From Mizuhopecten yessoensis (Eukaryota): a stretch of DNA of 64,000 bases. Shown piece by piece: positions 1,621 through 52,486 of the stretch. The stretch covers positions 1,113,144 to 1,177,143 of the forward strand of contig NW_018408922.1 of the NCBI RefSeq assembly GCF_002113885.1. The letters run 5' to 3'. The position numbers were made by a program, and so were the translations under genes. The notes beneath the pieces were generated by a model, which was not told the origin of the DNA, searched no databases, and was given only the letters and a program-made list of their open reading frames with translations. The stretch's first letter is position 1; the number at the start of each line of letters is the position of its first letter.

Positions 1621-2335
1621 ACTTTATTTTACTTATTCAATTAAGGAATTTGATAATAATTGTGTAATTGAAAAAAGTGTTTGTGCTATAATACGACCGA
1701 AACTTTAACAGTGACATAGATGTTAGACAATGCAGTCCTATTTGTCATAAAATGAATTCTGAAACAAAACAATCTTGATCTTAACTTCCTTATATATTTA
1801 TACATTTTGCGTAGGCTGACGCTAATATCAAATCTCCATGGGCGGTTGGTTTGATTGCTACAGTACATATTAAAATACCCAGAAAGACTATTCTAGTTAG
1901 TAGGATATGGACACTCAAACGTTATCAAACCATCGGGTCCGACTACTTTGAATTATACGTGATGCATTTACAAAATTGAAATTACCCGATGACCAATTCA
2001 TTGATATTATTCCGCACGTTGGGTTTTTCAGAAATATTCAGTAATCTAACAGTATTTGTTTCTGGCTAAACCTCATTGTCGAATGATAGGTACAGTAACA
2101 AAAGCAATCTGAATTAGCGTAAGATTATTTCACATTTTGGAGGTTTAAGGTCACAGTGAAATTATTTTTTAGAATTTATAAACATATGTGTATGTGTCAG
2201 AGGGTCACTACTAGTACTGCTTTTAAGGTTTACATCGAACTTATGTTTCTGCTTTTATAATATATAGCACAGGAGCTCGTTACGATCATTAGAATATATT
2301 GATCGAAACGAGGTCATGTACAGTGTATATGTAGG

Positions 2336-4151
2336 GTCATCCCCATACTTACGTCTTACTATCGTCTACTAATTACATATGTATATAACCTCCACATGTA
2401 CCGACCGGCATGTGTATAAAGTCATATTTATCACGTTAACCCGGTATGTTTACGCTCTCCTCAACGGAAGATGCACGCGTGATCAGTAGGTTAGATCTAC
2501 GCATCCTCTGGACCAATCGAGTACCGAGTAGGCGATATTTAATTTCAGACAGGTTTTAAGAAGTCATCCCCATACTTACGTCTTACTATCGTCTACTAAT
2601 TACATATGTATATAACCTCCACATGTACCGACCGGCATGTGTATAAAGTCAGATTTATCACGTTAACCCTGAATGTTTACGCTCTCCTCAACGGAAGATT
2701 CACGCGTGATCAGTAGGTTAGATCTACGCATCCTCTGGACCAATCGAGTACCGAGTAGGCGATATTTAATTTCAGACAGGTTTTAAGAAGTCATCCCCAT
2801 ACTTACGTCTTACTATCGTCTACTAATGACATATGTATATAACCTCCACATGTACCGACCAGCATGTGTATAAAGTCATATTTATCACGATAACCCGGTA
2901 TGTTTACGCTCTCCTCAACGGAAGATGCACGCGTGATCAGTAGGTTAGATCTACGCATCCGCTGGACCAATCGAGTACCGAGTAGGTGATATTTAATTTC
3001 AGACAGGTTTTAAGAAGTCATCCCCATACTTACGTCTTACTATCGTCTACTAATGACATATGTATATAACCTCCACATGTACCGACCAGCATGTGTATAA
3101 AGTCATATTTATCACGATAACCCGGTATGTTTACGCTCTCCTCAACGGAAGATGCACGCGTGATCAGTAGGTTAGATCTACGCATCCGCTGGACCAATCG
3201 AGTACCGAGTAGGTGATATTTAATTTCAGACAGGTTTTAAGAAGTCATCCCCATACTTACGTCTTACTATCGTCTACTAATGACATATGTATATAACCTC
3301 CACATGTACCGACCGGCATGTGTATAAAGTCAGATTTATCACGTTAACCCTGAATGTTTACGCTCTCCTCAACGGAAGATTCACGCGTGATCAGTAGGTT
3401 AGATCTACGCATCCGCTGGACCAATCGAGTACCGAGTAGGCGATATTTAATTTCAGACAGGTTTTAAGAAGTCATCCCCATACTTACGTCTTACTATCGT
3501 CTACTAATGACATATGTATATAACCTCCACATGTACCGACCGGCATGTGTATAAAGTCAGATTTATCACGTTAACCCTGAATGTTTACGCTCTCCTCAAC
3601 GGAAGATGCACGCGTGATCAGTAGGTTAGATCTACGCATCCTCTGGACCAATCGAGTTCCGAGTAGGCGATATTTAATTTCAGACAGGTTTTAAGAAGTC
3701 ATCCCCATACTTACGTCTTACTATCGTCTACTAATGACATATGTATATAACCTCCACATGTACCGACCAGCATGTGTATAAAGTCATATTTATCACGTTA
3801 ACCCGGTATGTCTACGCTCTCCTCAACGGAAGATGCACGCGTGATCAGTAGGTTAGATCTACGCATCCGCTGGACCAATCGAGTACCGAGTAGGCGATAT
3901 TTAATTTCAGACAGGTTTTAAGAAGTCATCCCCATACTTACGTCTTACTATCGTCTACTAATGACATATGTATATAACCTCCACATGTACCGACCAGCAT
4001 GTGTATAAAGTCATATTTATCACGTTAACCCGGTATGTTTACGCTCTCCTCAACGGAAGATTCACGCGTGATCAGTAGGTTAGATCTACGCATCCGCTGG
4101 ACCAATCGAGTACCGAGTAGGTGATATTTAATTTCAGACAGGTTTTAAGAA
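2336..4151. repeat. 227-bp tandem satellite, 8 complete copies
   Basis: GTCATCCCCATACTTACG recurs at 2336, 2563, 2790, 3017, 3244, 3471, 3698 and 3925. Copies are near identical. Confidence 0.97.
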
Positions 4152-7100
4152 AAACAATTCTACTTGCGGGGGTCAAATTCTGGGTTAAAAATCATGATTT
4201 TTTGCATATTTTGGTGTTTTTTGATATGGTAACGATGGTTTTCAGAAGTCCCAAATCTGGGGAAATTGCTTTTTGAAAAAAAAAAATGTTCTTCTAAAAA
4301 ATACCTATTAAACATGTAGTTTATGAATATATATATATATGTAGGTGTGTTGTGCAGGATGATTCCGCTATCCATGTTTATCCGAGAGATGCCATTTATT
4401 TTTAGGGTCAAGCCATTTCTACTGTACTCTGCCACCCCAGTGTCGTAGCATACATGCATGCTTGTATGCTCAAACATACACTAACACTTTCAAGATTTTT
4501 TATTCAAGATATCTTTATACATTTCATTTTTCATGATTAATATGGACCGTCCGTATCAATCATAAAAAAGGAAAGAAATGACAAGAATCTTCTTGAAAAT
4601 TTTAGTCTGCTAAAATAGTGTTGTTATGTTATGTCTATACACATTGACAAATCATCAAGATCTATGTAAATCAAAAACTACTTAAAGAAGTATAATATTA
4701 AACTGTATTCATATAAAAAGATCGGATTTTCATTGTTAATAATCAAAATAAAAGGAAGTCCCAGAACATGGGAGATTGCTGCTAGGGCCTAGAAGATTTT
4801 TTTTTCAGCTAGCATTCCCCCTATTCCGGCGCTATGCGCCTAGGACGGTCGACCGTCAGAATACACTCCGAAAAATGATTAGCTACGTCACTCTGACCGA
4901 GAGACGCCCATATTACCACTCTAAAAAATAATCTGCTGTTAACTCCACGTATATTTTCGTCTCTTCAGATGATTTTTATTTTTGGCCATTATTTTTCTTT
5001 TATTAAATCGACCATTTCCCTCTCCGTTGTATGATGTATTGAGTGAGTGTTAATAATTTCTCGTTTGGCAATGGTGCTTTTTCAGCGTCTCTTTGTTTTG
5101 TATTCATATAATCTATCGTACTGTTGCATGTGACTATCATTTGTATCGTCTATGACAAGGATGTGTACCCCACCTTTGTTGTTATAAAAAAGCAGAAGTC
5201 AATTTTACTTCTGATCTGTGTATGATTCAATTATTAAACCTATCATTTATTAAATGATCATTTTGCAACAATCACAGATTATTAGTTGTTTTCGTCACAG
5301 ATAACACTTCAACAAAAACAAGATTCGGTATCTTATTTTGTTTTGCAGACAAAGATAACATTTCAGTTCAAAGTAAAGGTGATTCCAAAATCGTCTATAA
5401 GGTGACAATGCAATTAGTAAAACAATGTACTTAAGACATATAATAGGATGCATTGTTATACCAATATCACATAAAATATGTAAGATTTTCGGAACAAACA
5501 TATAAAATAAGTTTCAATTAAATTCAAATATGCTATCCGATTAAAATATGAAATTGCACTTACGAAAAATTAAATCTTTCACATCTCATCACATCTAAAC
5601 AGTAACCATTTATAAAAGCGGAGGCATTTCAAACGTCGATTTATTTAAGTTGTTATAGTGGTATGCATCTGAAACCATAAGTTATTTTGCCGGTGTAATA
5701 TTGTTCGCAAATGACATAAAAATAAACAAATTAAAACTGAGTGAAAGTATATATACAAAATCTTACCGGCGTTGGTGTATCTATCAACTGGAGACATTCA
5801 TCAAACGGCATCTGTCGGAATTTGTATGTTGTCCCCAGTCTGTCCGTTATTTAACCTAAAGACTACTACCATATGTGAACATGTTCGCAAGTGTTTTCTT
5901 AAAACTCTTTATTTCTTGTAATCAAACAGTGACAACTTTGATACGAATAATAAGGAAGATATTAATGTTTATAAACATTAAGTATACATTGGTTTCAAGT
6001 GATATCGTTAAAGCGTACATCTCCTTTCACCGGAAATGGTACATCGTTGTTGAGATGATTACTGACAGATCTAGAGGCCTTTGTAAATAAGATTGAATCA
6101 GTTACAACCATTGGTGATAAGTGCTCTCTGAAGTACTTGAAGCCCCATTTCTGCCAAATACGAATCGGCGTTTTAAACTTTTCTTTCCGAGAAAATGTTA
6201 ACGATTACGCGGCAAACGAATTGCCTACCTATCAGAAATGAGCAAGACCTTCATCATCACTGGTATTTAAGTATAGCTGTAAGTATCAGGTTCTAATATA
6301 GTGTCGTTTCTGGAAACTCTATTTGTTTTAGTTTTGTACACATTTTATGCTAATTTCAAACTAGCACTGTTTAAGTCAGTCATCCTCGGTACTCCAGGGG
6401 TTACACTGACTTACACTGTCTGAACCCTGGAATATGTCATGACGAAATTAAAGGCAGCTACACTGTATTGTATTAGACTAAGGTATGAAAAAAAAACAGA
6501 TCAATTTATAGGCTGATATCTATCCTCTGAAGATTTCCGAGGAGCGACACCAGACTTCAAAGCCTGTCAATTGAATCGTTACGCCTCCGCACGGTCCTTT
6601 TGCTGTTCATCAAGCGTTTGTTTTTTCATAGATGTGTTACTATGCTGAAGTCGAAACGATTTCGCCACCGCCTCTTAAACACCCTTCATATGCATCAGTT
6701 TATAAACATGTAAGTCGCGGTGAATTTCTCCATTCACATTACGAGCCATGAATACTACTACCCATAAAATCAAGCTTCTTGCGACGTCCATCTTAAGCCT
6801 TACATTGTCCTCGGCCGACCACTTTTCTTCTACATGTATCTTTATCCATATTTTGTTATTTTGCTAATATTTGACACCGTTACATAGGGTACATGTATTG
6901 TGTACACTCACATGCATTCGTTTTGATTTCTGTTTTCTACATAAATGATTATTGAAATTTTACACGTAGTAGTTAAAAAGAACTAGACATATTTAATCAC
7001 AAATATTATATCTTATAAAACTAAGTAATTTCCATCCGTATATTGTTTTGCGACGTTATAATAAATATACAGAGGATATTTTTTTTTCCCTTGAATACCA

Positions 7101-7236
7101 TACATATTTTACGCGTATGAATATCAACATTTTTCACTGGTACAAAGTGCCAAATTTTGTAGCGCGTAGTATTTGACGCCAGGTTCTAATGACGTCACGC
7201 TTGACAACAAAACTGAGTGTCGTTTTGTTAAGCATC

Positions 7237-7349
7237 GAACTGTTTTTGTATGGTATTTATGATCTATTTGAATGACACAGCTTTGCAAGCAAACAACATA
7301 ATGCGCGCTATGATTCAAATAGATCATAAATACCATACAAAAACAGTTC
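7237..7349. repeat. Perfect 37-bp inverted repeat with a 39-nt spacer (hairpin or non-autonomous DNA element core)
   Basis: GAACTGTTTTTGTATGGTATTTATGATCTATTTGAAT (7237-7273) is the reverse complement of 7313-7349. Confidence 0.9.
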
Positions 7350-7930
7350 AATACTTATATTTACGTTTTCTCTGCCTCTTATGTTCTTTTTTAACTTATA
7401 ATTTATATTTAAAATTAAAAATGCCCGCCTTATCGACAGTCCACACAATTTCGTTCAATAGTTTGAACAGCGTATTGTCGTGTGCTGATTGGCAAACAAA
7501 GTAGTACTTTGAAATTTTAACAAACACTTCAATTTTATTCCACAATTCAGTATCAATACAATTGCGTATGATATGTCTATAGGGTGATTTAAGTTTATCA
7601 ATAGAACTCTGAGCTGAAAGTAATATTTGAAATTGTTTCGATTTTTCCCCGAAACAAATTTCGCGCATGGACAAATACAGTGAACACCGTAAATCCGACC
7701 TTGCCCTCCACGAGGGAGTTATTTTTGGAAGTTAATTCGAACTTTTCTCTTTGCTCATTTTGTGAAGAATCCAGGCGTGAATTTATTTGTTGATTGTATG
7801 GGAACCTGACAACAGTCGGTAGATTCTATAACAGCCTCGTTATTTGACATGTCGTCAGAAACTGAGGAACCGTGGATGCGAGACGCGTGAAACTGATAGC
7901 GTTTGAAGTGAGTGATCTTGCGACGGAGCA

Positions 7931-8052: not shown

Positions 8053-10759
8053 TTGATCAGTGCAGTGTAACAGACGATATTTCTGATAAATTGCATATGC
8101 GTTAAAATTGTTTCCATTGCCGGCATTGGTGATTTCAACCGATGTGCATTTTGTACGATATTGCAGACATTGGTCTTGTTTTCGTTGCAATAAAAGTGTT
8201 TTTATTTTATTTTTTTATTTTGCACATAAATTTACAATGGCATTGTCAAATCTCACAATGCCCAGCGATATTTCAGCAGCCGTCATGCTTATTTATATTG
8301 GATATTGTAGTTCCGGTCAGTATTGTATTAGTACGCTAAGAATTGCGTCTCGTGATGCATGGTAATTAAAGTCCCATCAACGACACAGCTTTCAAAGAGG
8401 CTATATAGTGACAATGCCATGCAAATGTAAATATAATGGGTTGTTCAACACAATTCTTCCGTTTGCTGCTTTCATGTGATTTCCACAAAAATGATATTAT
8501 TTGTGTTGTTACATAATATATGTTAAAAAACAACGACTTATTCTGCCGCCGCTTCATCACCACTTAAAATTGAAAGTCTACGCAGTAAATATACCGTTCT
8601 GATTTGACAATATTTATGTGATATCTTCACATGTGAAGATATAATATGTCGTATGCCTTTCAGTGAAGATATCAGCCTTTAACAATTGATAATTCATGAT
8701 GTTTAATAGTTAGAATGTAATAAAGTGTTTCAATTTTTGGAACCTGGAGATATGTATAAAAATGTTCTTCTCATAGGATAAAAACGTTATGAGAGGTGAA
8801 GGTGACACACACATAGATATAAAGGTTCTAACGAGAGCTAGTTAATTTTCATATTGTACGAAGACATTAGGTAGACTGAGTGCCTTTTACAATTTGAAAA
8901 AGATAACAAAAGAAAGTGAAAAATATGTACATATGATAACCAATCATCGCGTGTTTTGTGATTTGTTTCTCCGATAACGTTCTTATTCTATCTAGAAAAA
9001 CGTGTAGGAGAAGACAAGGGACCACATTCATGCTGATTAGTTATAATGTTTATTCAACTCTGTTAGGTGAATTCTGAGAAAACATGCATTAACAACATAT
9101 TTTGTGGGAGAAGTAAAAAAGACATGAAATAATTTGCCAAAATTTCAAAATACAATTAAGTAAATACAAAAATGATATTGTAAAATTTATAAAACAGTTG
9201 CAAAAGTTTCATTTATATAACACTTTATGATTTTTTTTTTATTAAAGCTCTTTAAAGATGAACAATATCTCTTTCTGTCACTCCTGACTTCGTTTTTGGT
9301 CTTTCTTTCTTTCTTTACATGTTCTCCTCTGTCACCAAAGCACCGTTTCCCTACTTCTCTATCATAATCAATTAACCATATTAAGTATAAGGAATACAGC
9401 TAGATTGTGTGGTTGATGCCTCGAATAACCTTTCTTACGACATATATGAATGCATTTTTTGAACAATATACCAGTGTACAGTAAAACCTTTTGATATCAA
9501 TACGTGTAAATGTACGACAATTCGGTTCAAATCATACAAATCTTTCGTAACTACTCTATATATCATCATTACGGCATTTGTTTGGACAATCACCAACGCG
9601 TTAAAGGATGTTTTACGAAATGATTTCATATTTGTTGTCAGACTTTGAATAAATGTCAGAAAATTATCATCTAAGTCCCCGGAACAAGATATATCCAAAG
9701 ATAAATTGTAGCTTGACAATTATTTTTTAAACATGACATTTGCTCGTCCTTTATGATATAACAAACCTGATAATATACATAGGTTGTCTTTCTTCAACTA
9801 TTTAACGCGGGTATTGACACAATGCAATATATGATATAGGGTATCTTGTCTGGAGGAAATGATTTCACGAGATTATTGAAAAATTGCGCCTTTTTCATGT
9901 TTGTGTGAATATCCATGTCTTTAAAAGACAACAAATGGGAAGAAGGCACATATCCTTTTGTAAATAATCGAACTTCCCTTCAATATACTTATCTAGATTC
10001 GAGATTCGACAACAAAACCCCCCAGAACGGGTGAAGTGAAGTCAGGAAAACAAATACCCTTGCAGTGCAAGCGGATTGCCCATTTGTTTTGTGTGTGTTC
10101 ATGATGACCTCCGTGCGCGTTGATGTTATGGTATGGTACTTTTTTCCAACAATGACTAAAACCTTTACAGTTACTGTATTTTACTCAGAAATGTAATAGG
10201 ACATAATCCATTCAAATGACATTTAGTTGTTAAATATAAAAGAATGACACGTCTCGCTCCACTTAGCGATTTGCATATAACAACACAACGCAAATATCTT
10301 TTTTTGCCTCTAGCTCACAGAAAGGACGTATGGCGGTGGGCGTTTAATCAGTATATGTACATGCACAACATTACTAATAATCCATGACAAAAACCAAAAT
10401 GCAATCAAAATACATATATACAAATAACCCCTCGTACATATACCGATAGTTAACAGCTTGCCGTCATCTGACGTGAAAAAAACATTTACACCGCAGTCTG
10501 ACGTTGACTGCGCGAAACGACAATAAAGAGACACCTCGATCATCGAAATCAACCTGCACGCCCAGGAAAAACCGGAGATATCCCCCGGAAAACGGTAACC
10601 AAAAGCGGGACAAATATTATTTCCCTGCAAGTCCGATTTCTCTGACGTGACAGTTGGACCGCTGTCTTCTCTTCTATAACAGACCTACTGAACCACCCTA
10701 AGAAAAAAAACGAAAAAAAACCTATCCATCCTTAAGTTTAGAATGAATCGTACGCTTAC

Positions 10760-11610
10760 CTGCTAAATGACTCGCATTCTGCTCTACGTAACTTTTAACA
10801 TGAACAGGTGGTTCCTCACCAGCTCCGTGTACAAATAAGCAAGTGCGCTCTGACACATCTCTACTGTATCCGTGTCGTTTCCAGCTCGTTGTTGTCTGTG
10901 TTACACGTTGAGTTTAAAAGCACATTAGTGCATGGCCCATCCTGAACAACGGAAGCGGTCCGAATGGTTTGCAATGAAGTTTTTCTCCACTCTGATACCT
11001 TTGCTTGAATACTATTATACATTATGTAATTCAATTTTTCTCCGTCCATGCATATCTCGATTGTTTCCCCAGCAAGTATCAATTTCCAAATATGTCCGGA
11101 ACAATGGATTGACACCCCACTTGATACAGTTTGGTCAGTTTTCAGGATATTCTGGAAACTTTTAGCCCATGTTAAATGTGTAATGTCATTAACACAATAA
11201 TTCAGTGTAGTGTCATTTCCATGAGATAAGCTTATGGTACCTTTGTCGTTTGCCAATCGAACATAGGTTGTATAGTCCAAATCGGAATCTGACGTGTTTG
11301 TAGTTAACTTCTCAGTTTGTTGCAAGCTAAGTTTTTTCAAAAGCTGATTCCATTCGATCTTGAGATGTGTTGATACAAAGCCGTCTGTTTCATGCTCAAC
11401 TGTATCGAGATCTAAGGAAGCCCGAAATGAGAAAGGAAATAGATTAACTGTTTGTTCACTTTGGAGTTTAATGACAAAAAATAGCAAGTCCACATAATGC
11501 AATCACACATATGGCTACGACACCAACCACACAAGAGCACCATCTACGTCCAATCTTGGTATACGCGTTGTAAAAACACTGACGAACAGCTGAAAGGCAG
11601 GTTCTTGATC
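10760..11610 (-). pseudogene. Paralog A of the TM/beta-domain/alpha-beta-hydrolase family; two frameshifts, hydrolase domain truncated
   Basis: Begins after the acceptor ttcttcag (~11611). TM segment RRWCSCVVGVVAICVIALCGLAIF joins VIKLQSEQ (ORF 10861-11502) if one T is removed from the T6 run near 11476-11481. The ORF matches the beta domain of the paralogs (IEWN..LSLQQT, YC..W..FQNIL, CSGHIW, C.DG.KL.YI.Y, V.EW). Another frame gives RTCLFVHGAGEEPP (C codon 10841-10839), then a GTAAG donor-like site at 10759. No HSMG motif was found downstream. Confidence 0.85.
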
Positions 11611-15329: not shown

Positions 15330-17066
15330 ATGGTTTGTATAATGCACTTGTACACCATGGAGGATAAGGATAATACGCCTGTGACGGCAGATGAAAGAGA
15401 ACAACCAAATATACCATGCAGTCAGAAGATTCGTGAAGACCAGCGACCTCAATGGAACGCTGGACAGGGGTGGAATTTGCTTAATATACAACCTTTGTAT
15501 GTTTTGATAACAATAGTCATTGCTTTACTGTCCGCTATCGTGGTAGCAACAGTTACATATACCGACACATCGTCAAAAAAGCAGTTGGCAACACGAAATG
15601 CACTGAGCGTGTCCTTTAAAGCAACACTCGTCATACCGAGCCCGAACAGTAAGGGCAGGGTTAAAACTTTTCTCGATGTTGAATGGAACGCTGAATACAA
15701 GAATATCAGTTTTCAAAAAACGTCTGAATATCGTCAAAGCCATCAGAATAGCGTAAAGGAATTTTCAACAAGAGTCATCATTGCAGATAACAAAGCCGCT
15801 ATGGGGATGTTACATAAAGACGAAAAACACTTTCACTGTTTTCAGCACGTTAAGCACTCGCTGTGGCTAAGTGTTTTTCAGTTAATATTGACAACTCCTT
15901 CATCGTTTGATTCGGTTAACAAGGAAAGCGGCTCTAGCGGGACAAGCTACAGGTGGAACGGTTCTGAAATATATACACTGCTGGAGTACTTCATAGAAGG
16001 ACCAAGACTGAAATATATAAAATACAATGGTGCACAGGCAAATGTTACTGACTGGAGCATCAGCAAAGAACGAACCATATTTGTACCAGACAATACAGAA
16101 AACGGGCCTTGCGAAGAATTTCGACCATCAACGTCGCCGGTCTATCAAGATTTCATGTTTTCTGACCACAGCAGTTCTGTTGAAAAATACAAAGTCGAAA
16201 AGAAGGAAAAAATGAAAGAATCAAAAACGTGTTTGTTCATACACGGAGCCGGAGAGATCCCAAGTGGTGACTGGAACCTTACTAGCCTTCCAAGCTACTG
16301 GGGCGATATAAAACAGTACACGCCGGACTGTGCCTTCCATCGATTCATCCATTACGACAGCGTTCACAACGCCTGGGATGATGAAAAGTTACAAGAAAGG
16401 ATATGTGATTTTGCAGCTACAAATGGCATCATTCAGGACAAGGTGATATTCACTCATTCTATGGGAAACTTAGTTCTTGCTGCCGCTCTGCATATGAAGA
16501 AATGTGAGTTTGATAAATCAAATAGTCGTTGGTATTCTATACAGGGGCCATGGAAAGGCAGCCGGGAAGCTGATAAACTAATTCAGATATGCAAATCAAA
16601 GAAAGAGTTCGACGAAATACTACGATTTATTTTGCACGAACTACATTATAACAATTACTGCAATAGCACGACCCTTCAGGCAATGCCGGCTTACCAATCT
16701 CTGACAAGCACATATATGAAATCGAATAAAATCGATTTTGCTTGTTTGACTCAAATAGCGAATTCGTTTATATCAGGCGTGATGTGTGGTACTAGTGCAC
16801 TAGGACTGTGGCGGCAAGATGAATTCCATGCTGTTGCCCTAATGGTTATACAAAACTTTGCAGGACTTGAAGAACCAAACGATGGTATGGTGGCTTTTGA
16901 GAGCTGTTCTATAAAAGGCGAATTTGATAATGACTGGAAAAATAAATTCTACAAGGGGGATTTTAATCACGAACAGGGCACTTGTCGGTTCGGAAAGGTC
17001 AGTGATTCGTTTCGCAATTCACATAAATATCCCAATCCATGTATGTGGTTTTCTGAGATGCACTAA
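15330..17066 (+). CDS. Paralog B: intact single-coding-exon type II membrane protein with C-terminal alpha/beta-hydrolase (lipase-like), 578 aa
   Basis: Uninterrupted ORF. TM LYVLITIVIALLSAIVVATVTY; CLFIHGAG (oxyanion region), YWG, FTHSMGN (Ser codon 16458-16460), GPWKGS, GVMCG, NDGMV, FNH, terminal PCMWF. AATAAA overlaps the stop and recurs near 17316. The true start may be a downstream Met. Confidence 0.92.
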   Translation: MVCIMHLYTMEDKDNTPVTADEREQPNIPCSQKIREDQRPQWNAGQGWNLLNIQPLYVLITIVIALLSAIVVATVTYTDTSSKKQLATRNALSVSFKATLVIPSPNSKGRVKTFLDVEWNAEYKNISFQKTSEYRQSHQNSVKEFSTRVIIADNKAAMGMLHKDEKHFHCFQHVKHSLWLSVFQLILTTPSSFDSVNKESGSSGTSYRWNGSEIYTLLEYFIEGPRLKYIKYNGAQANVTDWSISKERTIFVPDNTENGPCEEFRPSTSPVYQDFMFSDHSSSVEKYKVEKKEKMKESKTCLFIHGAGEIPSGDWNLTSLPSYWGDIKQYTPDCAFHRFIHYDSVHNAWDDEKLQERICDFAATNGIIQDKVIFTHSMGNLVLAAALHMKKCEFDKSNSRWYSIQGPWKGSREADKLIQICKSKKEFDEILRFILHELHYNNYCNSTTLQAMPAYQSLTSTYMKSNKIDFACLTQIANSFISGVMCGTSALGLWRQDEFHAVALMVIQNFAGLEEPNDGMVAFESCSIKGEFDNDWKNKFYKGDFNHEQGTCRFGKVSDSFRNSHKYPNPCMWFSEMH

Positions 17067-32880: not shown

Positions 32881-33842
32881 TTATAGTCATCTTTCACGAG
32901 TTAAGTCAATTAGACATCCGATTCGAGTTCAAACATAAAAGTTCAGTAAGAATTTTTCTTGATACTAATGTCAAAGGGGTATTCATCTGATCGCCACCAG
33001 TATGCATTCTAAACGAATTCCATGACTGAAACTACATGAATGAAGAGTTCTATTGAATTATTTATACCCCTTTTCTAGAGACATTTAAAAAAACATGTAT
33101 ATGATCTGCACTAAATAATTTGGTGCATCCTATAACCCAACCTCAGCAGGCAGAGGGTTGAGGAAAACACTCCATGTAAGAGGCTACTAATGTGGAACGC
33201 CCTTACAGACTGGGAAATGTGCATTTGTGCCTTCTACTTGGGGACGAATAAGTGACCAAAAGCAAAGCTGCTGCTATTTAACAAAATATGGTTTCTTTGT
33301 TTTACAAACCATTAAATTATTGCGCTGAATTCCCAATTGAATAAAATTATCTCAACAATTTATCCTAAATTTACAGTATTTCTTGCGAACAAGTGATGAC
33401 ACTTAGGAGAAAGAAAAACAAGAAACTATATAATTGTCAAGTACTAATATGTTGTACATGTATTGATTACTTATAAAATGAACAACCCAAACATTAAGAG
33501 CAGGACCAGGTTTGGGTCGGACATTGGTCATCATCGGTATGGCATAAACGTTTACCGTGTTGTGGTTTCATTATAAATATTTGTGTTTGTTTGTTCGAGT
33601 GGTTTACGTCAGCTTCACAGCAGACGAATATAATATTTTGAGTTGGAAGGGTTTATAAAGAGACTATGCCCTATAATTGTCATAAACCGAGCTCCATACG
33701 ATCATAATCAGCTCAGCTCCATAGACAAACAATGACGTAAGTAAGTGGACAGGTCAGAATGGCTACCAAGGGAGGTTTTGGATTCTCTTTCTTTCATATT
33801 AAAGACAAACGAAGGGGAATAGTTTATCGTTTATCCGTTTAT

Positions 33843-36611
33843 CCCAAATTTAACAAAATCCTGTCATTCGTAAAGAAGATGAAAGATTTTGAAGAATATG
33901 ATATTTTTCCGCTATTGGGCCCCGCCATTCCAGGCCTCAGGGGATCCACACCCACCATTTATACAAAATTGATTTCCCTTCCAAATATGATGCTACTGTT
34001 CAAATTTGGTCAAAATACCTTCATCCTCACGAAAGGAGAAAAAAAAAACCAAGCTATTCCTCTATATCACTTAATGGGACCCCGCCTCTGTGCCCCCAGG
34101 GGGGTCAGACCCACCGTTTATATAAAATTGCTTCCCCTTCACCCAAAGATGCTTCATACAAAATTTGGACAAATCCTGTCATTCCTCCAGAAGAAAAAGG
34201 ATTTTGAAGAATTTGCTGTTTCCCCTATTTGGCCCCGCTCCTCAGCGCCCAGGGGGGCCACACTCACTGTTTATATAAAATTTAGTCCCTTTTGTCCAAG
34301 GATGCTCCAGACGAAATTGGGATGAAATACCTTAATCCCTATGGTAGAAGAAAGATTTTAAAGGTTTTAACTCTATTTCCCCTATTGGGCCCCGCCCCTC
34401 TGCCCAAAGGAGGGCCATACCCACCATTTATACAAAATTAAGTCCCCTTGGCCCAAGGATGCTCCAGACTAAACTAGGATAAAATCCCTTAATCCCTACG
34501 GTAGGATAAGGATTTTGAAGGTTTTACCTCTATTTCCAATATTCGGCCCCGCCCCTCTGCCCCAAGGGACCACTATTTATACAAAATTGATTTCCCTTCC
34601 AAATATGATGCTAATTCTCAAATTTGGTCAAAATACGTTAATACCAACGGAAGAAGAAGGAAATTAAAGCTATTCCTCTATATCACTTATTGGGCACCGC
34701 CTCTCTTCCCCCAAGGGGGTCAGACCCACCGTTTATACAAAATTGCTTCCCCTTCACCAAAGGATGCTTCATACCAAATTTGGACAATATCTTGTCATTC
34801 CAACAGAAGATGAAGGATTTTGAAGAATTTGCCATGTTTCCCCTATTTGGCCCCGCTCCTCAGCCCCCAGGGGGACACACTAACTGTTTATACAAAATTG
34901 AGTCTGATTTGCCAAAGGATACTCCAGACCGAATTGGGATGAAATCCCTATGGTAGAAGAAGGATTTAAAAGGTTTTAACTCTATTTCCCCTATTGGGCC
35001 CCGCCCTTCTGCCCCGGGGAGGGCCACATCCACCATTAATACAAAATTTAGTCCCCTTGGCCAAAGGATGCTTTAGACTAAATAAGGATAAAATCCCTTA
35101 ATCCCTACGATAAAAGAAGGATTTTTAAAGGTTTTATCTCTATTTCCCCTATTGGGCCCCGCCTCTCTGCCCCAAGGAGGGACACACCCTCCATTTATAC
35201 AAAATTGAGTCCCCTTGACGCAAGGATGCTCCAGACCAAATTGGAATCAAATCCCTTAATCCCTACGATAAAAGAAGGATTTTTGAAGGTTTTACCTCTA
35301 TTTCCCCTTTTGGGCCCGCCCCTCTGCCCTTAGGGGGCCACACCCCCATTTATACAAAATTGAGTCCCCTTGAACAAGGATGCTCGAGACCAAATTGGGA
35401 TGAAATACCTTAATCCCTATGATAGAAGAAGGATTTTAAAGGTTTTACCTCTATTTCCCCTATTGGGCCCCGCCCTTCTGTCCTCAGGGGAGCCACACCC
35501 AACCTTTATACAAAATTGAGTCCCCTTGGCCTAAGGACGCTCCAGACTAAATAAGGATAAAATCCTTTAATCCCGACGGTAGTAGGACTTTTAAGGTTTT
35601 ACCTCTATTTCCCCTATATGGACTCGCCCCTGTGCCCCCAGGGGGGGGGCACACCTAACCTTTATACAAAATTGAGTCCCCTTGACCCAAGGATGCTCCA
35701 GATTAAATTATGATAAAATCCCTTAATCCTCAAGGTAGGAGAATGATTTTGAAGGTTTTACCTCTATTACCCCTGTTCAGCCCCGCCCCTCTGCCCCAAG
35801 GGAGGCTACACCCACCATTTATACAAAATTGATTTCCCTTCCAAATATGATGCTACTGTTCAAACTTGGTCAAAATACCTTCATCCCAACGGAAAAAAGG
35901 AAATTAAAGCTATTCCTCTATATCCCTTATTGGGCACCGTCTTTCTGCCCAAAAGAGGGTCAGACCCACCGTTTATACAAAATTGCTTCCCCTTCACCCA
36001 AGGATGCTTCATACCAAATTTGGACAAAATCCTGTCATTCCTACAGAAGAAGAAAGATTTTGAAGAATTTGCTATGTTTCCCTCTTAGGCCCCGCTTCTC
36101 AGCCCCCAGAGAGGCCACACTCACTGTTTATACAAAATTGAGTCCCTTTTGCCCAAGGATGTTCCAGACCAAATTGGGATGAAATGCCTTAATCCCTATG
36201 GTAGAAGAAGGATTTTAAAGGTTTTACCTCTATTCCCCTATTGGGTCCCGCCCCTCTGCCCTCAGGGGGGCCAAACCCAACCTTTATACAAAATTGAGTC
36301 CCCTTGGCCTAAGGACGCTCCAGACTAAATAAGGATAAAATCCTTTAATATACGGTAGAAGGATTTTAGAGGTTTTACCTCTATTTCCCCTATTGGGCCT
36401 CTTCCCTGTGCCCCAAGGGGGGCCACACCAATCATTTATACAAAATTGAGTCCCCATGACCTGAGGATGCTCCGGACCAAATTTAGTCAAATTCTACTTG
36501 GCCGTCCAGGACTAGTAGCGTTTTAAAGGAAAAATTGACAGACGGACGGACGACGGACGCTGCGATATGGCATAAGCTCACCATGGTCCTTCGGACCAGG
36601 TGAGCTAAAAA
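33843..36611 (-). mobile_element. HINE/Helentron-type non-autonomous element carrying ~17 internal ~155-bp satellite units
   Basis: Minus-strand 5' end TTTTTAGCTCACCTGGTCCGAAGGACCATGGTGAGCT (subterminal hairpin) followed by a (GTCC)n-like microsatellite at 36535-36560, then a ~155-bp tandem array (CCAAGGATGCTCCAGAC, GGCCCCGCCC). No 3' box was seen at the left end. Confidence 0.85.
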
Positions 36612-37708: not shown

Positions 37709-39358
37709 TCAATTTTTGGAGTACCATTGACATGGGTGTTGATTGGATGTCGTAAAACAACGCCGCTCTCCGAAACGACATGTTCCTTCGGCGTGATTGA
37801 AATGTCCACTGTAGTAGTTGGCGGTTGGTTTATTTTCAAAACTGCCTGTGATGTTGCAACTGTCGAACGCAACTAAACCGTCGTTTGGGAGTGGCAAGTG
37901 TGTGTACGCGGACACAAGGTGTAAGCGGGCACTCATAGAAAGAGACAGACCCATTCCGAAAGCGCTATTACCGCACACAGCCCCAGAAATATAACGTCGG
38001 GCCGTCCTTATAAGGTCTTTATAAGACACACCAGTCGGTGAAACGTACGAGGTGTTCATCGACATGTAGGCCTGTGCCGGGCGACTTTTGTTTACGTCAC
38101 AATAATGTAGTTCCTTCAGCACAATGTAGGTTATTTTTGTTTCTAGGTTCTTTTTTGAGCAAAGGGAATAAAGTTCTTTTGAGACCTTACTCCCTCTCCA
38201 AGGCGCTTGTATAGAGTACCATTCACTAGTGCTATGGTCGAACTTACAAAAGCGTCTGTGGAAAGCCGCAGCAACTACCAGATTCCCCATAGAGTGTGTA
38301 AATACCATACTATGCGAAATAGGCCGACTCGAATTACCGATTGCAAATTCACAGAACATCTTATGTGATTCTGTATCGTCCCAGCCACGGTTAATACTGT
38401 TGTACCACATGAAGCGTCGTGTAAGGCACTGTGGAGTGTATCGTTCAATGTGCCCCCAGTAGTGCAGTAGTTCTGGCATGTCCATGTATCTGTCTGTTTC
38501 CGGGTGCTCACCTGCACCGTGAACGAACAAACAATGTTTCTTTGGTTTTCGTTTTAGGAGTGACTTTCCTGATTTTGTAGTAAAACTGTCTGCTAACGAC
38601 ATAGCGTCTTCCAAAAGTGATATATTTGGGTACACAGCATTGCACTTTTCTAACTGTTGAGGTAGTTTAATTACATTAAATGGACGTGCATTCCATTCCG
38701 TCACCGTGGCGCGTGTTCCAGCGTGGTCAATGTACACCAATCGCGAGTCTTGGATACAGAAGAAGATCGTTTGACCTGCTATCCTTGTATACAATTCGTT
38801 TCCGGTACAACTCTGATCATTTCCGCGACTTCCGGTGTATGACTTAGCCTGTTTCTGCAGAATGATTTGAAACACTGTGAGCCATTCAACCGACTCTGTG
38901 TCATTTTGACAAAACCATTGCTCTTCCTTTTCATACATGACGCCTAACACTGCTGAATTGTTGGCATAAATGAACCTGGTAATGGTTTTGTTCCCATGTT
39001 AAAGTGAATGTGATTCACTTGTTCGAGTTTCTTGATATGTAACAGAACGCGTATCGGAGTTCCAGTCAACATCAATCGATATGTTTGTATCTTCGGCTTC
39101 CTCCTGTTTATTTTTCGATAGCTTTAATTTTGCTTTGAAGGAATGTGAAAATATGTGCTGCAAAGTTGTATTTGTTGTGGCGCGTGTGTCAGTAACGTAT
39201 AAGTGGGCAAAATGGAGACAGACGAGTATACCCACTGCGGCGACTCCAAGACAGAGGACGGCCAAAGCCAGTTTACAGTACGGTCGTCTGGAGGGACGTC
39301 TTATCTGCGTTTGTAGAAGCCCAATTCTTTCCGGGTCCGCCATTTTGATATTCTTCAT
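37709..39358 (-). pseudogene. Paralog C: full-length (~549 codons) TM/beta-domain/alpha-beta-hydrolase gene interrupted by one in-frame TAA at 39001-38999
   Basis: ORFs 38999-39358 and 37709-38950 share a frame: ...SESHSL*HGNKTITRFIYANNSAVLGVMYEK. TM LALAVLCLGVAAVGILVCLHFA; CLFVHGAG, YWG, FTHSMGN (Ser 38293-38291), APWRGS, GAVCG, NDGLV, FNH, PCQWY. Polypyrimidine acceptor ttttcttttcaag ends at 39384. Confidence 0.9.
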
Positions 39359-50866: not shown

Positions 50867-52486
50867 ATGCCGTTGGCCAACGAAACCGAAAGTCTTCTGA
50901 GACCACAACAGACAAAATGGCGATATCGGAAGATGTTTGTCATTGTGATTTTCTTGGTCCTGTTATGTGTCGTTGCCAGTCTTACCTTTGGCTGCATATA
51001 CTGGATAAAAACTTTCAACAACAAAATCAATGTTGTTCATTTAAAAGATAAACTGCCCAGTTCGTTTGGAGTTTCGTTTAACATTCAAGCTGAAAATTCG
51101 TCTCTTCTTACGAGTACAAAGGACGTCACTGTCAGATGGGAAAAAGAGCCAAATCTCATGAGATTTCAACAAAAAAGCGTGGAAACGCCTTGGAACGAAA
51201 GCATCGTCACTACCGTCAGCATACTGGACCATAGAGCCGTAGTTTCGTACACTCTAGAAAACAAGACTAGCTGGATATGCGCTAACGATTTAAAAATCTT
51301 CGACTGGTTTTCAATTTTTCGCCTCATGATGATTTCCACTGAATCTAATCACACAGACGATAACTGTACCGGCCGTATATGGACAGTACCATACGAAGGA
51401 CAGAGGGTATTTATATGTTTAAGAGGAAATCGAATCGCTTACATAAAGTATGATAACAAAGTTGCTGAGCCTCAAGAATGGGTGGTCCCCTCCCGATCTT
51501 CCATCAAACTGCCCAAGGATGCACCCGAGTGTAGAGTAAAATACCCACAGGTGTCTTCATTCAGCATACTAGAACAGGGTAGTGCTAATTCAACTAGAAA
51601 CCAATATGATAATAGAAAAGGTGAAGTACTTTTGGGTCAACCAGAAATATTTGCTAGAAGTACAAAACCAGACTGTCTATTTGTTCACGGAATTGGTGTA
51701 GAGACGCCAAAAAGTGGATTCAGAACTCTCACTAGCTTACACTACTGGGGCCACATCGAAAAATACACCCCACAGTGTATATCGCACAAGTTTATTGAGT
51801 TCAACACAGTCGACAATGGCTGGGACTCTAAAGTTTTACATGAAATGTTCTGCGAGTTTGCCACTGGCTCAAAGTCAGGAGGAATCATTGTCAACAAGCT
51901 AATTATTTCCCACTCCATGGGAAACAACATCATTGCGGCAGCGCTTCACAGCAAAAACTGTATATTGGACAAGGCGTCCAGTCAATGGTTCTCCGTGTCT
52001 GCACCCTGGCGTGGAAGCAAGGTGGTGGACACGCTCGAAACTCTCTGCTCTGGTTACTTAAGATATAAGCCTCTCGGGAAAATGGTGGCATATATATTAA
52101 AGCACACAAAGTTTTGCACAGAGGACGGCAACATGTCTCCGGCCTACGCCACACTGGAGCCCACCTACAAGTCCAAAACAGGTATCACTTACGACGATCT
52201 TGTGTCCATAGCTAAACAGTATGTAAACGGGGCGTTGTGTGGCACATCGCCATGGGGTATCGGCCTGAATCTACCATTCAGCGGGGCTTTGGAGTTCATA
52301 CAAGATTACAGTAAACTCGAGAAGCCAAACGACGGGGTAGTGGCACGAAAAAGCTGTGACATTTTTGGCGGAAAATTTCAAAACTCCTCCCATAACAAAT
52401 TCTTTCTGGCCTCCGTAAATCATGGTGAGAGTTCTACCAAATTTGGCTGTTCTGTGAATCTTTGTTCGTGGTTTAGACACTTGTAA
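50867..52486 (+). CDS. Paralog D: intact single-coding-exon type II membrane alpha/beta-hydrolase (lipase-like), 539 aa
   Basis: Uninterrupted ORF. Cytosolic ETESLL, basic KWRYRK, TM MFVIVIFLVLLCVVASLTFGCIYWI; several N-glycosylation sequons; CLFVHGIG, YWG, ISHSMGN (Ser 51914-51916), APWRGS, GALCG, NDGVV, VNH, CSWF. Confidence 0.93.
   Translation: MPLANETESLLRPQQTKWRYRKMFVIVIFLVLLCVVASLTFGCIYWIKTFNNKINVVHLKDKLPSSFGVSFNIQAENSSLLTSTKDVTVRWEKEPNLMRFQQKSVETPWNESIVTTVSILDHRAVVSYTLENKTSWICANDLKIFDWFSIFRLMMISTESNHTDDNCTGRIWTVPYEGQRVFICLRGNRIAYIKYDNKVAEPQEWVVPSRSSIKLPKDAPECRVKYPQVSSFSILEQGSANSTRNQYDNRKGEVLLGQPEIFARSTKPDCLFVHGIGVETPKSGFRTLTSLHYWGHIEKYTPQCISHKFIEFNTVDNGWDSKVLHEMFCEFATGSKSGGIIVNKLIISHSMGNNIIAAALHSKNCILDKASSQWFSVSAPWRGSKVVDTLETLCSGYLRYKPLGKMVAYILKHTKFCTEDGNMSPAYATLEPTYKSKTGITYDDLVSIAKQYVNGALCGTSPWGIGLNLPFSGALEFIQDYSKLEKPNDGVVARKSCDIFGGKFQNSSHNKFFLASVNHGESSTKFGCSVNLCSWFRHL

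Follow-up and report, generated by a model that had tools for sequence, protein, structure and literature searches.

Within the window analysed here, a stretch of 64,000 nucleotides (64 kb) from the scallop Mizuhopecten yessoensis, four paralogous genes encode proteins of one plan, in which a cytosolic tail and one transmembrane (TM) helix are followed by a Cys-containing domain of ~170 amino acids, referred to here as the N-domain, and an alpha/beta hydrolase. The question is what kind of domain is placed between membrane and enzyme, and whether it could serve the hydrolase as a lipid carrier, as the original prediction had supposed. In bivalves, the gene family is annotated just as “uncharacterized”. 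Table 1 gives an overview of the four genes and their features.

Table 1. Features of the four paralogs in the window; A, B, C and D denote the genes at 10861, 15330, 37709 and 50867, respectively.
Feature	Position	Strand	Remarks
Paralog A	10861-11502	-	keeps the N-domain and only the first hydrolase residues
Paralog A, N-domain	10930..11454	-	four Cys at the family positions; from alignment
Paralog B	15330..17066	+	intact, 578 aa
Paralog B, TM helix	15492-15560	+	about aa 55-77; followed by N-domain, linker and hydrolase
Paralog B, N-domain	15588..16112	+	aa 87-261; lacks the pre-beta7/beta8 Cys pair; from alignments and BLASTP
Paralog B, hydrolase start	16230	+	Cys301
Paralog B, triad Ser of HSMGN	16458-16460	+	
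Paralog B, triad Asp of NDGMV	16881-16883	+	
Paralog B, triad His of FNHE	16968-16970	+	
Paralog C	37709-39358	-	reading frame with one in-frame TAA
Paralog C, N-domain	38642..39166	-	aa ~65-239 of the 37709-39358 frame
Paralog C, in-frame TAA	38999-39001	-	within the N-domain; remainder (lipase domain to 37709) open
Paralog D	50867..52486	+	intact, 539 aa
Paralog D, N-domain	51038..51532	+	aa 58-222; sequence used for AlphaFold2
Paralog D, N-domain Cys	aa 138, 167, 184, 222		from alignment

An unnamed domain with a motif pattern common to all four paralogs had been proposed at 15600-16110, which corresponds to aa 91-261 of the 15330 ORF and fits the limits in Table 1. The pattern itself is borne out by the alignments, in which SFxAxL or SFxVxF, [VI]xW, xFQ, CxG, IC, LxYIxY, [ED]W and a late Cys fall into register, and by BLASTP with the N-domain alone, which connects paralog with paralog at E-values of 1e-10 and 9e-24, a resemblance well beyond chance. 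Some details had to be corrected: the domain comprises ~165-175 rather than ~200 residues, the spacing given as C-x6-W aligns as C-x8-W-x3-F-[QR], and the range aa 90-265, ascribed to paralog B as ORF 10861-11502, fits the 15330 ORF instead. Word-index searches returned Pectinidae only, to which an exhaustive search of 1.84e9 proteins with an N-domain profile then added Unionida and Logan runs. In this search the orthologous domains scored E-values between 1e-9 and 1e-56, all of them in bivalve proteins of the same architecture (scallops, freshwater mussels and Logan runs), and yielded no second architecture containing the N-domain. A lone match in a protein of 3957 aa (E 1e-4, 33 residues) was judged spurious.

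The structure of the N-domain was predicted with AlphaFold2 (AF2) using the domain of paralog D alone (173 residues) and an alignment of 22 sequences. The model obtained (mc4b405faaf23) has a pLDDT of 89.2 and a pTM of 0.83, the pLDDT of the five models being 86-89 throughout, and consists of six strands, a hydrophobic lid helix at residues 89-97 with a short strand, and then four to five further strands. It shows the open antiparallel sheet expected in the original prediction and is neither helical nor disordered, nor does it match an unrelated known domain; in the AF2 model of the full-length protein the secondary structure of the N-domain is the same. Every fold search led to LolA, LolB, LprG, VioE or EPDR over residues 1-166 of 173, as the proposed LolA/ependymin-like fold would have it. 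The top 50 Foldseek matches in the PDB are nearly all LolA, LolB, LprG, VioE, EPDR1, EPD-BCP1 and RseB, with probabilities of 0.98-1.00 and modest values otherwise (E 1.7e-3 or weaker, TM 0.41-0.50 against solved structures). An exhaustive scan with VIA-align gave VioE as the best match (Z 11.1, 151 aligned residues, 3.4 A), followed by LolA (Z 9.6-8.7), sponge EPD-BCP1 (9.3), mouse EPDR1 (8.3), LprG (8.0) and LolB (7.3); the 13 matches with Z>=8 belong, by PDB title, to the LolA/EPDR superfamily except for an uncharacterised Thermus protein (2yzy). Matches in the ESM Atlas were LolA (TM 0.63) and a molluscan ependymin (TM 0.62), and a fold search with the full-length model likewise returned the LolA/EPDR superfamily for the N-domain. 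The strand layout is that published for EPDR1, with strands 1-6, the lid loop L7 and strands 7-11 (PMC6363788).

Since the alignment holds only 22 sequences, the Foldseek values are modest, best Z values of 7-8 in VIA-align are common without a true match, and outer-membrane barrels occur among the matches from Z 6.8 down, the assignment might be an artefact of a shallow alignment, with a match to no more than a generic curved beta-sheet, in which case the N-domain would be an unrelated, new beta fold. However, this is highly improbable in view of the agreement between the five models and with the separate full-length run, which repeats the strands, and of a top Z of 11.1, with more than 85% of the domain covered in the Z>=8 set, which is one superfamily bar the Thermus protein. 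Moreover, Foldseek, VIA-align and the ESM Atlas concur, and strand order, lid position and the beta6-to-tail Cys positions fit the published EPDR topology (PMC6363788). Judged from these models, the N-domain is very probably a member of the LolA/EPDR fold superfamily.

The cysteines were considered separately. The N-domain has four Cys across the family with the exception of paralog B, in which the CxG Cys and the IC Cys are both gone, in line with the earlier assignment of these two Cys to A, C and D only; in two orthologues the beta6 Cys has moved by three residues while the count is still four. One Cys closes beta6 as its last residue, another, which is invariant, lies 16 residues past the last strand, and these positions match the most conserved disulfide of EPDR (C113/C210 in human EPDR1). 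No Cys precedes beta1, and the other two are located just before beta7 and in beta8. As the latter two were lost jointly in paralog B, the Cys at the end of beta6 would pair with that of the C-terminal tail, and the pre-beta7 Cys locally with that of beta8, two disulfides that probably stabilise the N-domain. In EPDR, by contrast, the second pair (C42/C172) connects the N-terminal segment to shelf II.

At the sequence level, no such kinship is recognisable. Pfam searches with 13 N-domains at E<=10 gave neither PF00811 nor any other relevant match, NCBIfam at the same threshold gave nothing relevant, the PF03548 profile of bacterial LolA was likewise absent from the matches of both databases at E<=10, and no match was obtained in a profile search of PDB sequences. 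The weak match to DUF3839 (E 0.051) and one to Anti-TRAP were dismissed as noise. When the scallop genome itself was searched for the ependymin family, ependymin genes turned up elsewhere, with no N-domain among the matches, and a sequence relationship between N-domain and ependymin was discarded on the basis of an hhalign probability of 0.2% against a profile of six scallop ependymin exons. Because no sequence method ties the N-domain to Pfam Ependymin/LolA, it represents a new sequence family of the predicted LolA/EPDR fold; the fold is already known, and the sequence family and its pairing with a lipase appear to be new.

This partner domain is a predicted lipase resembling the bacterial families I.1/I.2. 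In the full-length model it has a pLDDT of 60-94, and Foldseek aligns it with Pseudomonas aeruginosa LipA (1ex9, E 8.2e-7), 4lip (2.8e-6) and 1ys1 (9.8e-6), with TM by target of 0.42-0.57; over the family I lipases as a whole (1ex9, 1ys1/4lip from Burkholderia, 4gxn from Proteus), E ranges from 8e-7 to 1e-5. Shared with these enzymes are the Ser elbow xHSxG, the Asp in NDGxV with the Cys that follows it, and a His near the C-terminus. The triad of paralog D (Ser350 in HSMGN, Asp489 in NDG, His519 in NH) does not vary among 10-12 sequences that cover two bivalve orders and has the canonical order Ser-Asp-His, with the Ser in a small-x-Ser-x-small elbow. Pfam gave a weak LCAT match at the nucleophile elbow and nothing else. 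Unlike the bacterial enzymes, to which it is 13-17% identical, the scallop hydrolase is eukaryotic and membrane-anchored, carries the extra N-domain and is rich in Cys, of which ten are conserved and nine are invariant across Pectinidae and Unionida.

In paralog D, the tail with an ExxxLL motif, TM helix and N-domain are followed by a disordered linker (aa ~227-265) and the lipase domain. A signal-anchor TM helix takes the place of a signal peptide, with a basic cluster N-terminal of it; the protein has 14-16 conserved Cys, and 5-9 sequons are located C-terminal of the helix. From this we infer a type II (N-in) single-pass protein with an exoplasmic N-domain. Motifs of the ExxxLL type are seen in many tails of the alignments, and this conserved acidic dileucine suggests an endolysosomal site of action. 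The linker, ~40-50 residues long, has a pLDDT of 26-30 over aa 230-260 of the full-length model.

Bacterial lipases of families I.1/I.2 require a membrane-anchored steric foldase. As the hydrolase's nearest structural relatives depend on such a helper, and 2es4 and 9g8u are among the PDB matches, the N-domain might be a pro-domain, acting as intramolecular chaperone, tether or inhibitor, that is cut off in the linker, so that the enzyme works alone or as two chains and no lipid cargo is involved. The disorder of the linker would suit such a cut, and in one subfamily a dibasic K-R immediately before the hydrolase core is conserved (KVKRDS / KIKRDS, KKKRD); however, the dibasic site is not kept in D-type or unionid proteins, and the present data contain no sign of cleavage. 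Moreover, the Lif foldases have a helical structure that bears no relation to the LolA/EPDR fold. For the LolA-like part of the 26/29-kDa peptidases it has been said that its role “might be different” from lipid binding, although hydrophobic-ligand binding is the one property that unifies the fold (PMC6363788). Taken together, we regard a pro-domain as unlikely. The “propeptide” lipase BlEst2 was considered as a precedent and dropped, its extra domains being C-terminal beta-sandwiches.

Among known systems, the EPDR1/MERP proteins (PF00811; 6jla, 6l9x, 8i34) likewise have a eukaryotic secretory-pathway LolA-fold domain of ~170-200 aa with four conserved Cys, and in both EPDR and the N-domain sequons lie in the lid region. 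For EPDR1, a lysosomal protein, a role in activating or transporting lipids has been proposed. EPDR proteins differ from the scallop protein in that they have a cleaved signal peptide in place of the signal-anchor TM helix and can stand alone or precede a cathepsin, whereas the scallop N-domain is joined to a lipase. The 26/29-kDa peptidases, which combine EPDR and cathepsin, show the same design of an N-terminal LolA/EPDR fold and an endolysosomal-type hydrolase in one chain; unlike in the scallop protein, the hydrolase is of the papain family and the EPDR part can be identified from its sequence. LolA/LolB and LprG/LppX (PF03548 and relatives) have an 11-stranded open antiparallel sheet, a helical lid and an apolar cavity, and the modelled N-domain is alike in sheet and lid, with one lid helix compared with three in LolA. 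Their cargo consists of the acyl chains of lipoproteins, glycolipids or triacylglycerides. However, these proteins are without disulfides, soluble or lipid-anchored in the periplasm, not fused to an enzyme and dissimilar to the N-domain in sequence. VioE of violacein biosynthesis (3bmz, 2zf3), a cytosolic bacterial enzyme, is 4% identical and alike at the level of the fold only; unlike the scallop protein it lacks a Cys pattern and is neither anchored in a membrane nor joined to a partner domain. In the literature, we found no description of a LolA/ependymin-type domain paired with a lipase.

Strands b1, b2, b3 and b5 have one face that is 0.8-1.0 apolar and an opposite face at about 0.15. Apolar character is also conserved in the lid helix, and the residues of the apolar face are kept from scallops to freshwater mussels. 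The property common to the superfamily is the binding of hydrophobic ligands (PMC6363788). In the proposed mechanism, the apolar face of the curved sheet would form a hydrophobic groove with the lid helix as its gate. At the surface of a membrane or particle, this groove would take up acyl chains or lipids that are otherwise apolar. The N-domain would then hand the substrate to the tethered lipase, or accept the products of the latter, as a built-in “activator protein” comparable to the role suggested for lysosomal EPDR1 and to the EPDR-plus-cathepsin architecture. Against a lipid groove, amphipathic strands are equally expected if the apolar face packs on the lipase or within a closed core. 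The best structural match, VioE, is an enzyme and not a carrier, which is a point against a carrier role. With these points considered, the chance that the N-domain binds or presents lipid, as read from the model, falls just short of even.

The N-domain could instead be LolA-like in shape with a job unrelated to lipid, such as that of a spacer that keeps the lipase at a distance from the membrane, a module for dimerisation or for recognising proteins, or a lid packing on the hydrophobic surface of the lipase. Its faster change, with a mean column identity of 35-43% vs 53% in the hydrolase, would agree with this, and the superfamily has members that are not carriers, namely the enzyme VioE, the regulator RseB and EPDR1, which dimerises (PMC6363788). 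However, RseB and VioE, too, use the cavity for hydrophobic ligands (PMC6363788), and both apolar face and apolar lid helix are conserved across the bivalves named above, which leaves a non-lipid function improbable in our estimation. For the explanation as a whole, an exoplasmic domain of LolA/EPDR fold that presents lipid to, or accepts it from, the tethered lipase, we have a slight preference.

Related proteins from marine protists and metatranscriptomes (L022, L025, L026) have N-regions of ~200 aa with four Cys, which fall into the Cys columns of the N-domain in a full-length MAFFT alignment. A direct comparison of these N-regions with the N-domain was not significant with hhalign, and with hmmsearch no better than with shuffled sequences. 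A broader reading, in which the bivalve proteins would be the first recognised case of a lipid-binding domain of LolA/EPDR fold fused to a lipase, with an in-cis activator lifting lipids from endolysosomal or food-particle membranes for the tethered lipase of bacterial type, and in which the protist-like N-regions have the same fold but have diverged too far for their sequences to show it, is held with considerable doubt. If it were true, the carrier-lipase module would be of ancient origin or would have spread horizontally among eukaryotes, and the proteins would offer a tractable system for the long-proposed role of EPDR as lipid activator.

Proteins of the EPDR/LolA fold are widespread in animals. 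The natural fusion to a lipase whose catalytic triad is intact would give an EPDR/LolA-type domain a built-in functional partner, and would be the second case, after EPDR-cathepsin, of this fold ahead of a hydrolase. The bivalve gene family is thereby provided with a predicted fold and a working hypothesis. In the scallop genome the family is tandemly expanded to at least nine loci, and the available paralog pairs are far diverged (at most 59-70% protein identity). Two of the four copies in the window (A and C) are damaged; the N-domain of paralog A is followed by a short ORF at 10722-10856, which reads CLFVHGAGE and then meets a stop, with no more lipase-domain similarity downstream of it. 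Paralog B, of which RNA was seen as a trace (one polyA run gave three reads, and two further RNA runs gave none, the RNA labels of the runs being guesses), forms a long branch in the family tree.

The window (G000:C5595:1113144-1177143), 64 kb with a GC content of about 35% and few long ORFs, lies on a 2.3-Mb contig of the Yesso scallop, Mizuhopecten yessoensis, and carries one gene family in four intronless copies, paralogs A to D (see table). The order of elements in the family is constant: a short tail, one hydrophobic helix, a motif region of about 170 aa, referred to here as the N-domain, a variable linker, and a hydrolase whose nucleophile elbow reads HSMGN. In the scallop's own genome, the N-domain profile recovers at least nine loci, of which the contig of the window carries seven. 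The 549 codons of paralog C are interrupted by a single in-frame stop, which falls within a variable N-domain loop, and its Ylistrum orthologue (P0007) is intact; the stop could reflect recent pseudogene formation, allelic variation or a mistake in the assembly. In paralog A (10722-11502, minus strand in total), the N-domain ORF with its four cysteines is intact, the hydrolase ends after about 40 residues and no more hydrolase similarity was found downstream. This is a copy in decay or else a gene for the N-domain alone. A 232-aa open frame resembling paralog A was seen at G000:C1566 (L015).

Location and state of the family members and of further open reading frames
Feature	Location	Strand	Length	Description
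Paralog A	10861-11502	-		N-domain ORF kept, then a short ORF beginning the hydrolase (CLFVHGAGE...), then a stop
Paralog B	15330-17066	+	578 aa	Intact; contains 15600-16110
Repeat-containing ORF	33759-34325	+	188 aa	About three internal repeats
Paralog C	37709-39358	-		Open apart from one in-frame TAA at 38999-39001
Paralog D	50867-52486	+	539 aa	Intact
L022 gene	Logan contig L022 (SRR27418475)		531 aa	Adjoins a frame-shifted tandem copy
L025 ORF	L025, metagenome-collection contig		557 aa	
L026 ORF	L026:91-1863, Ga0075496_1472208, metagenome-collection contig		590 aa	N-region with a Cys-rich hevein-like insert

The stretch 15600-16110 corresponds to aa 91-261 of paralog B and was delimited in this analysis as aa 87-261 (15588-16112). 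The motif pattern that the original prediction described for paralogs A to D is present as listed, apart from the C-x6-W-x3-F motif, which exists with the spacing C-x8-W. The ORF 10861-11502 cited there for paralog B is a slip. With the N-domain only, BLASTP aligned paralog B with D at an E-value of 1e-10 and with A at 9e-24, a sequence similarity well above chance. A profile of 13 N-domain sequences, scored against 1.84 billion proteins, gave ten matches at E<=1e-3, of which nine are proteins of 409-561 aa with the match at an equal position in the chain, one being the truncated paralog C of the window. The tenth match is weak and was set aside as spurious. The nine matches derive from scallops, from the freshwater mussel genera Potamilus and Sinanodonta and from Logan runs, and this sequence comparison shows conservation of the N-domain over two bivalve orders. 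The description of the domain as unnamed was correct, since it had no match in Pfam, NCBIfam or the PDB sequences.

An AlphaFold2 model of full-length paralog D from 12 sequences reached a pLDDT of 72, with the N-region predicted as ordered (pLDDT about 78-90) and nearly all beta. For the N-domain alone, folded with the 22-sequence alignment A3, which includes unionid and Logan sequences, the pLDDT was 89.2 and the pTM 0.83, and all five models were within 86-89. The model consists of six strands (9-18, 27-35, 40-49, 56-63, 66-73, 76-81), a helix (89-97) with a short strand, and four further strands (113-119, 122-129, 132-138, 141-149). Foldseek against the PDB returned almost exclusively LolA, LolB, LprG, VioE, EPDR1, the sponge ependymin-like carotenoprotein EPD-BCP1 or RseB among the top 50 matches (probability 0.98-1.00, E from 1.7e-3, TM 0.41-0.50). 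When 48,161 chains were scanned exhaustively with VIA-align, VioE scored best (Z 11.1, 151 aligned residues, 3.4 A), followed by LolA (Z 9.6-8.7), EPD-BCP1 (9.3), mouse EPDR1 (8.3), LprG (8.0) and LolB (7.3), with unrelated barrels from Z 6.9 downward. Twelve of the 13 matches at Z>=8, which extend over residues 1-166 of 173, belong to this superfamily by PDB title, the exception being the uncharacterised Thermus protein 2yzy. The ESM Atlas gave clusters of LolA (TM 0.63) and of molluscan ependymin (TM 0.62), and the search with the full-length D model also returned LolA. For the predicted models, three independent structure searches thus converge on one superfamily, and the strands follow the order published for EPDR1, with strands 1-6, lid loop L7 and strands 7-11 (PMC6363788). 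Together these two results support the LolA/ependymin-like fold originally proposed, and the N-domain very probably has the LolA/EPDR fold. A fold produced artificially by the modelling is unlikely, because the models and the search engines agree.

No sequence method linked the N-domain to Pfam Ependymin or LolA. At about 480-590 kb past the window, the same contig carries a cluster of at least five genes or exons for scallop ependymin (PF00811; G000:C5595:1654467-1700949; L001, L002, L004, L005), and hhalign of A3 against A5, a profile from six scallop ependymin exons, detected no similarity to the N-domain (probability 0.2%). The N-domain therefore forms a separate sequence family; as judged from its model, this family is new within the LolA/EPDR fold, and its combination with a lipase is a new architecture. 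Its four cysteines are the last residue of beta6, one before beta7 (C-x-G), one in beta8 (I-C) and one in the tail, 16 residues past the last strand. In paralog B the second and third, and no others, have been lost jointly while the first and fourth are kept, and two orthologues in which the beta6 cysteine is displaced by three residues still have four in total, which implies pairing of beta6 with the tail and of the pre-beta7 position with beta8. A linkage from beta6 to the C-terminal tail (C113/C210) has been described as the best-conserved feature of EPDR proteins in eukaryotes, and bacterial superfamily members have no disulfides (PMC6363788; PMC6280359). The cysteines thus point to the eukaryotic EPDR branch. 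The second putative pair departs from the EPDR pattern.

For the C-terminal 275 aa or so, Foldseek found Pseudomonas aeruginosa LipA (E 8e-7) and then Burkholderia and Proteus lipases (bacterial family I.1/I.2), and Pfam gave only a weak LCAT match over the nucleophile elbow. Nine cysteines and the residues corresponding to Ser350, Asp489 and His519 of paralog D are invariant from scallops to unionids, and the encoded chains show the N-domain covalently joined to a hydrolase whose triad is intact. The tail is basic beside the TM helix, conserved cysteines and 5-9 N-glycosylation sequons follow on its C-terminal side, and AlphaFold2 predicts one long helix (aa 17-51) in full-length D, from which we infer that the protein is oriented as type II and that both domains are exoplasmic. 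Many of the tails, which would be cytosolic, contain an acidic dileucine-type motif, ExxxLL/DxxxLL (ETESLL, ERTSLL, DRITLL, DRVDLL; window 50882-50899; alignments A1, A4), which is kept in the D-type, C-type and unionid proteins and missing from paralog B and the short-tailed group of 495-498 aa.

The concave face of the N-domain may form an apolar groove for acyl chains or other apolar lipids, which would serve the tethered lipase either by removing substrate from the surface of a membrane or particle or by accepting product. This is suggested by hydrophobic-ligand binding as the unifying trait of the superfamily (PMC6363788), by strands b1, b2, b3 and b5, in which one face is 0.8-1.0 apolar and the opposite face about 0.15 (22 sequences), by the conserved apolar lid helix (D-W-F-S-I-F-R-L-M in D), by the known eukaryotic architecture with an EPDR domain ahead of cathepsin, the sole precedent found in literature searches, and by lysosomal EPDR1, proposed as an activator or transporter (PMC6363788). 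Hand-off from carrier domain to enzyme is a reasonable hypothesis. The apolar face could instead be packed on the lipase, with the N-domain in a non-lipid structural or recognition role. Alternatively, the N-domain could act as a pro-domain, as a chaperone or as a tether and later be cleaved off: the linker is disordered, and one subfamily (P0008-P0013, P0011; A1) has a conserved dibasic K-R in it just upstream of CLFVHG (KVKRDS / KIKRDS, KKKRD), possibly a proprotein-convertase site that would part N-domain and lipase. Family I lipases also depend on a membrane-anchored foldase; however, that foldase consists of helices, and the dibasic site is not found throughout the family.

Beyond bivalves, shorter metagenomic and Logan proteins with 25-36% identity were found with a profile restricted to the lipase domain. 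In some of them (P0030, P0034, P0042) the lipase directly follows a signal peptide or lipobox; in others (L022, L025, L026) a TM helix or signal peptide precedes a four-Cys N-region of about 200 aa and the lipase. In the full-length alignment, the four cysteines of the L022, L025 and L026 N-regions fall in the bivalve Cys columns; hhalign and hmmsearch with shuffled controls gave no significant similarity of these regions to the bivalve N-domain. In the maximum-likelihood tree, the bivalve proteins form a single clade separate from these three, and paralog B has a long branch (1.1), consistent with the loss of its putative second disulfide. The L026 insert resembles a hevein-type chitin-binding module (C-x-G-x-x-C...W-G-W-C-G). 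The L022 tandem members (1858-3660, 5914-7509), the first broken by frame shifts, flank an unrelated 532-aa protein, leucine-rich by eye, and come from an organism whose genes are intronless and closely packed.

Paralog B showed trace RNA, with three reads within the ORF in one polyA RNA-seq run, none in two other RNA runs, and low-depth fragments in one small assembly whose RNA origin is only guessed, an amount too small to establish expression. Logan contigs of about 2 kb contain complete orthologues with short flanks and are compatible with transcripts; no poly-A is present at their ends. The 188-aa ORF, with repeats of about 60 aa each (...PRG..PT.YIKL...), lies in a stretch of raised GC content (0.44) and is probably no gene but a repeat element.
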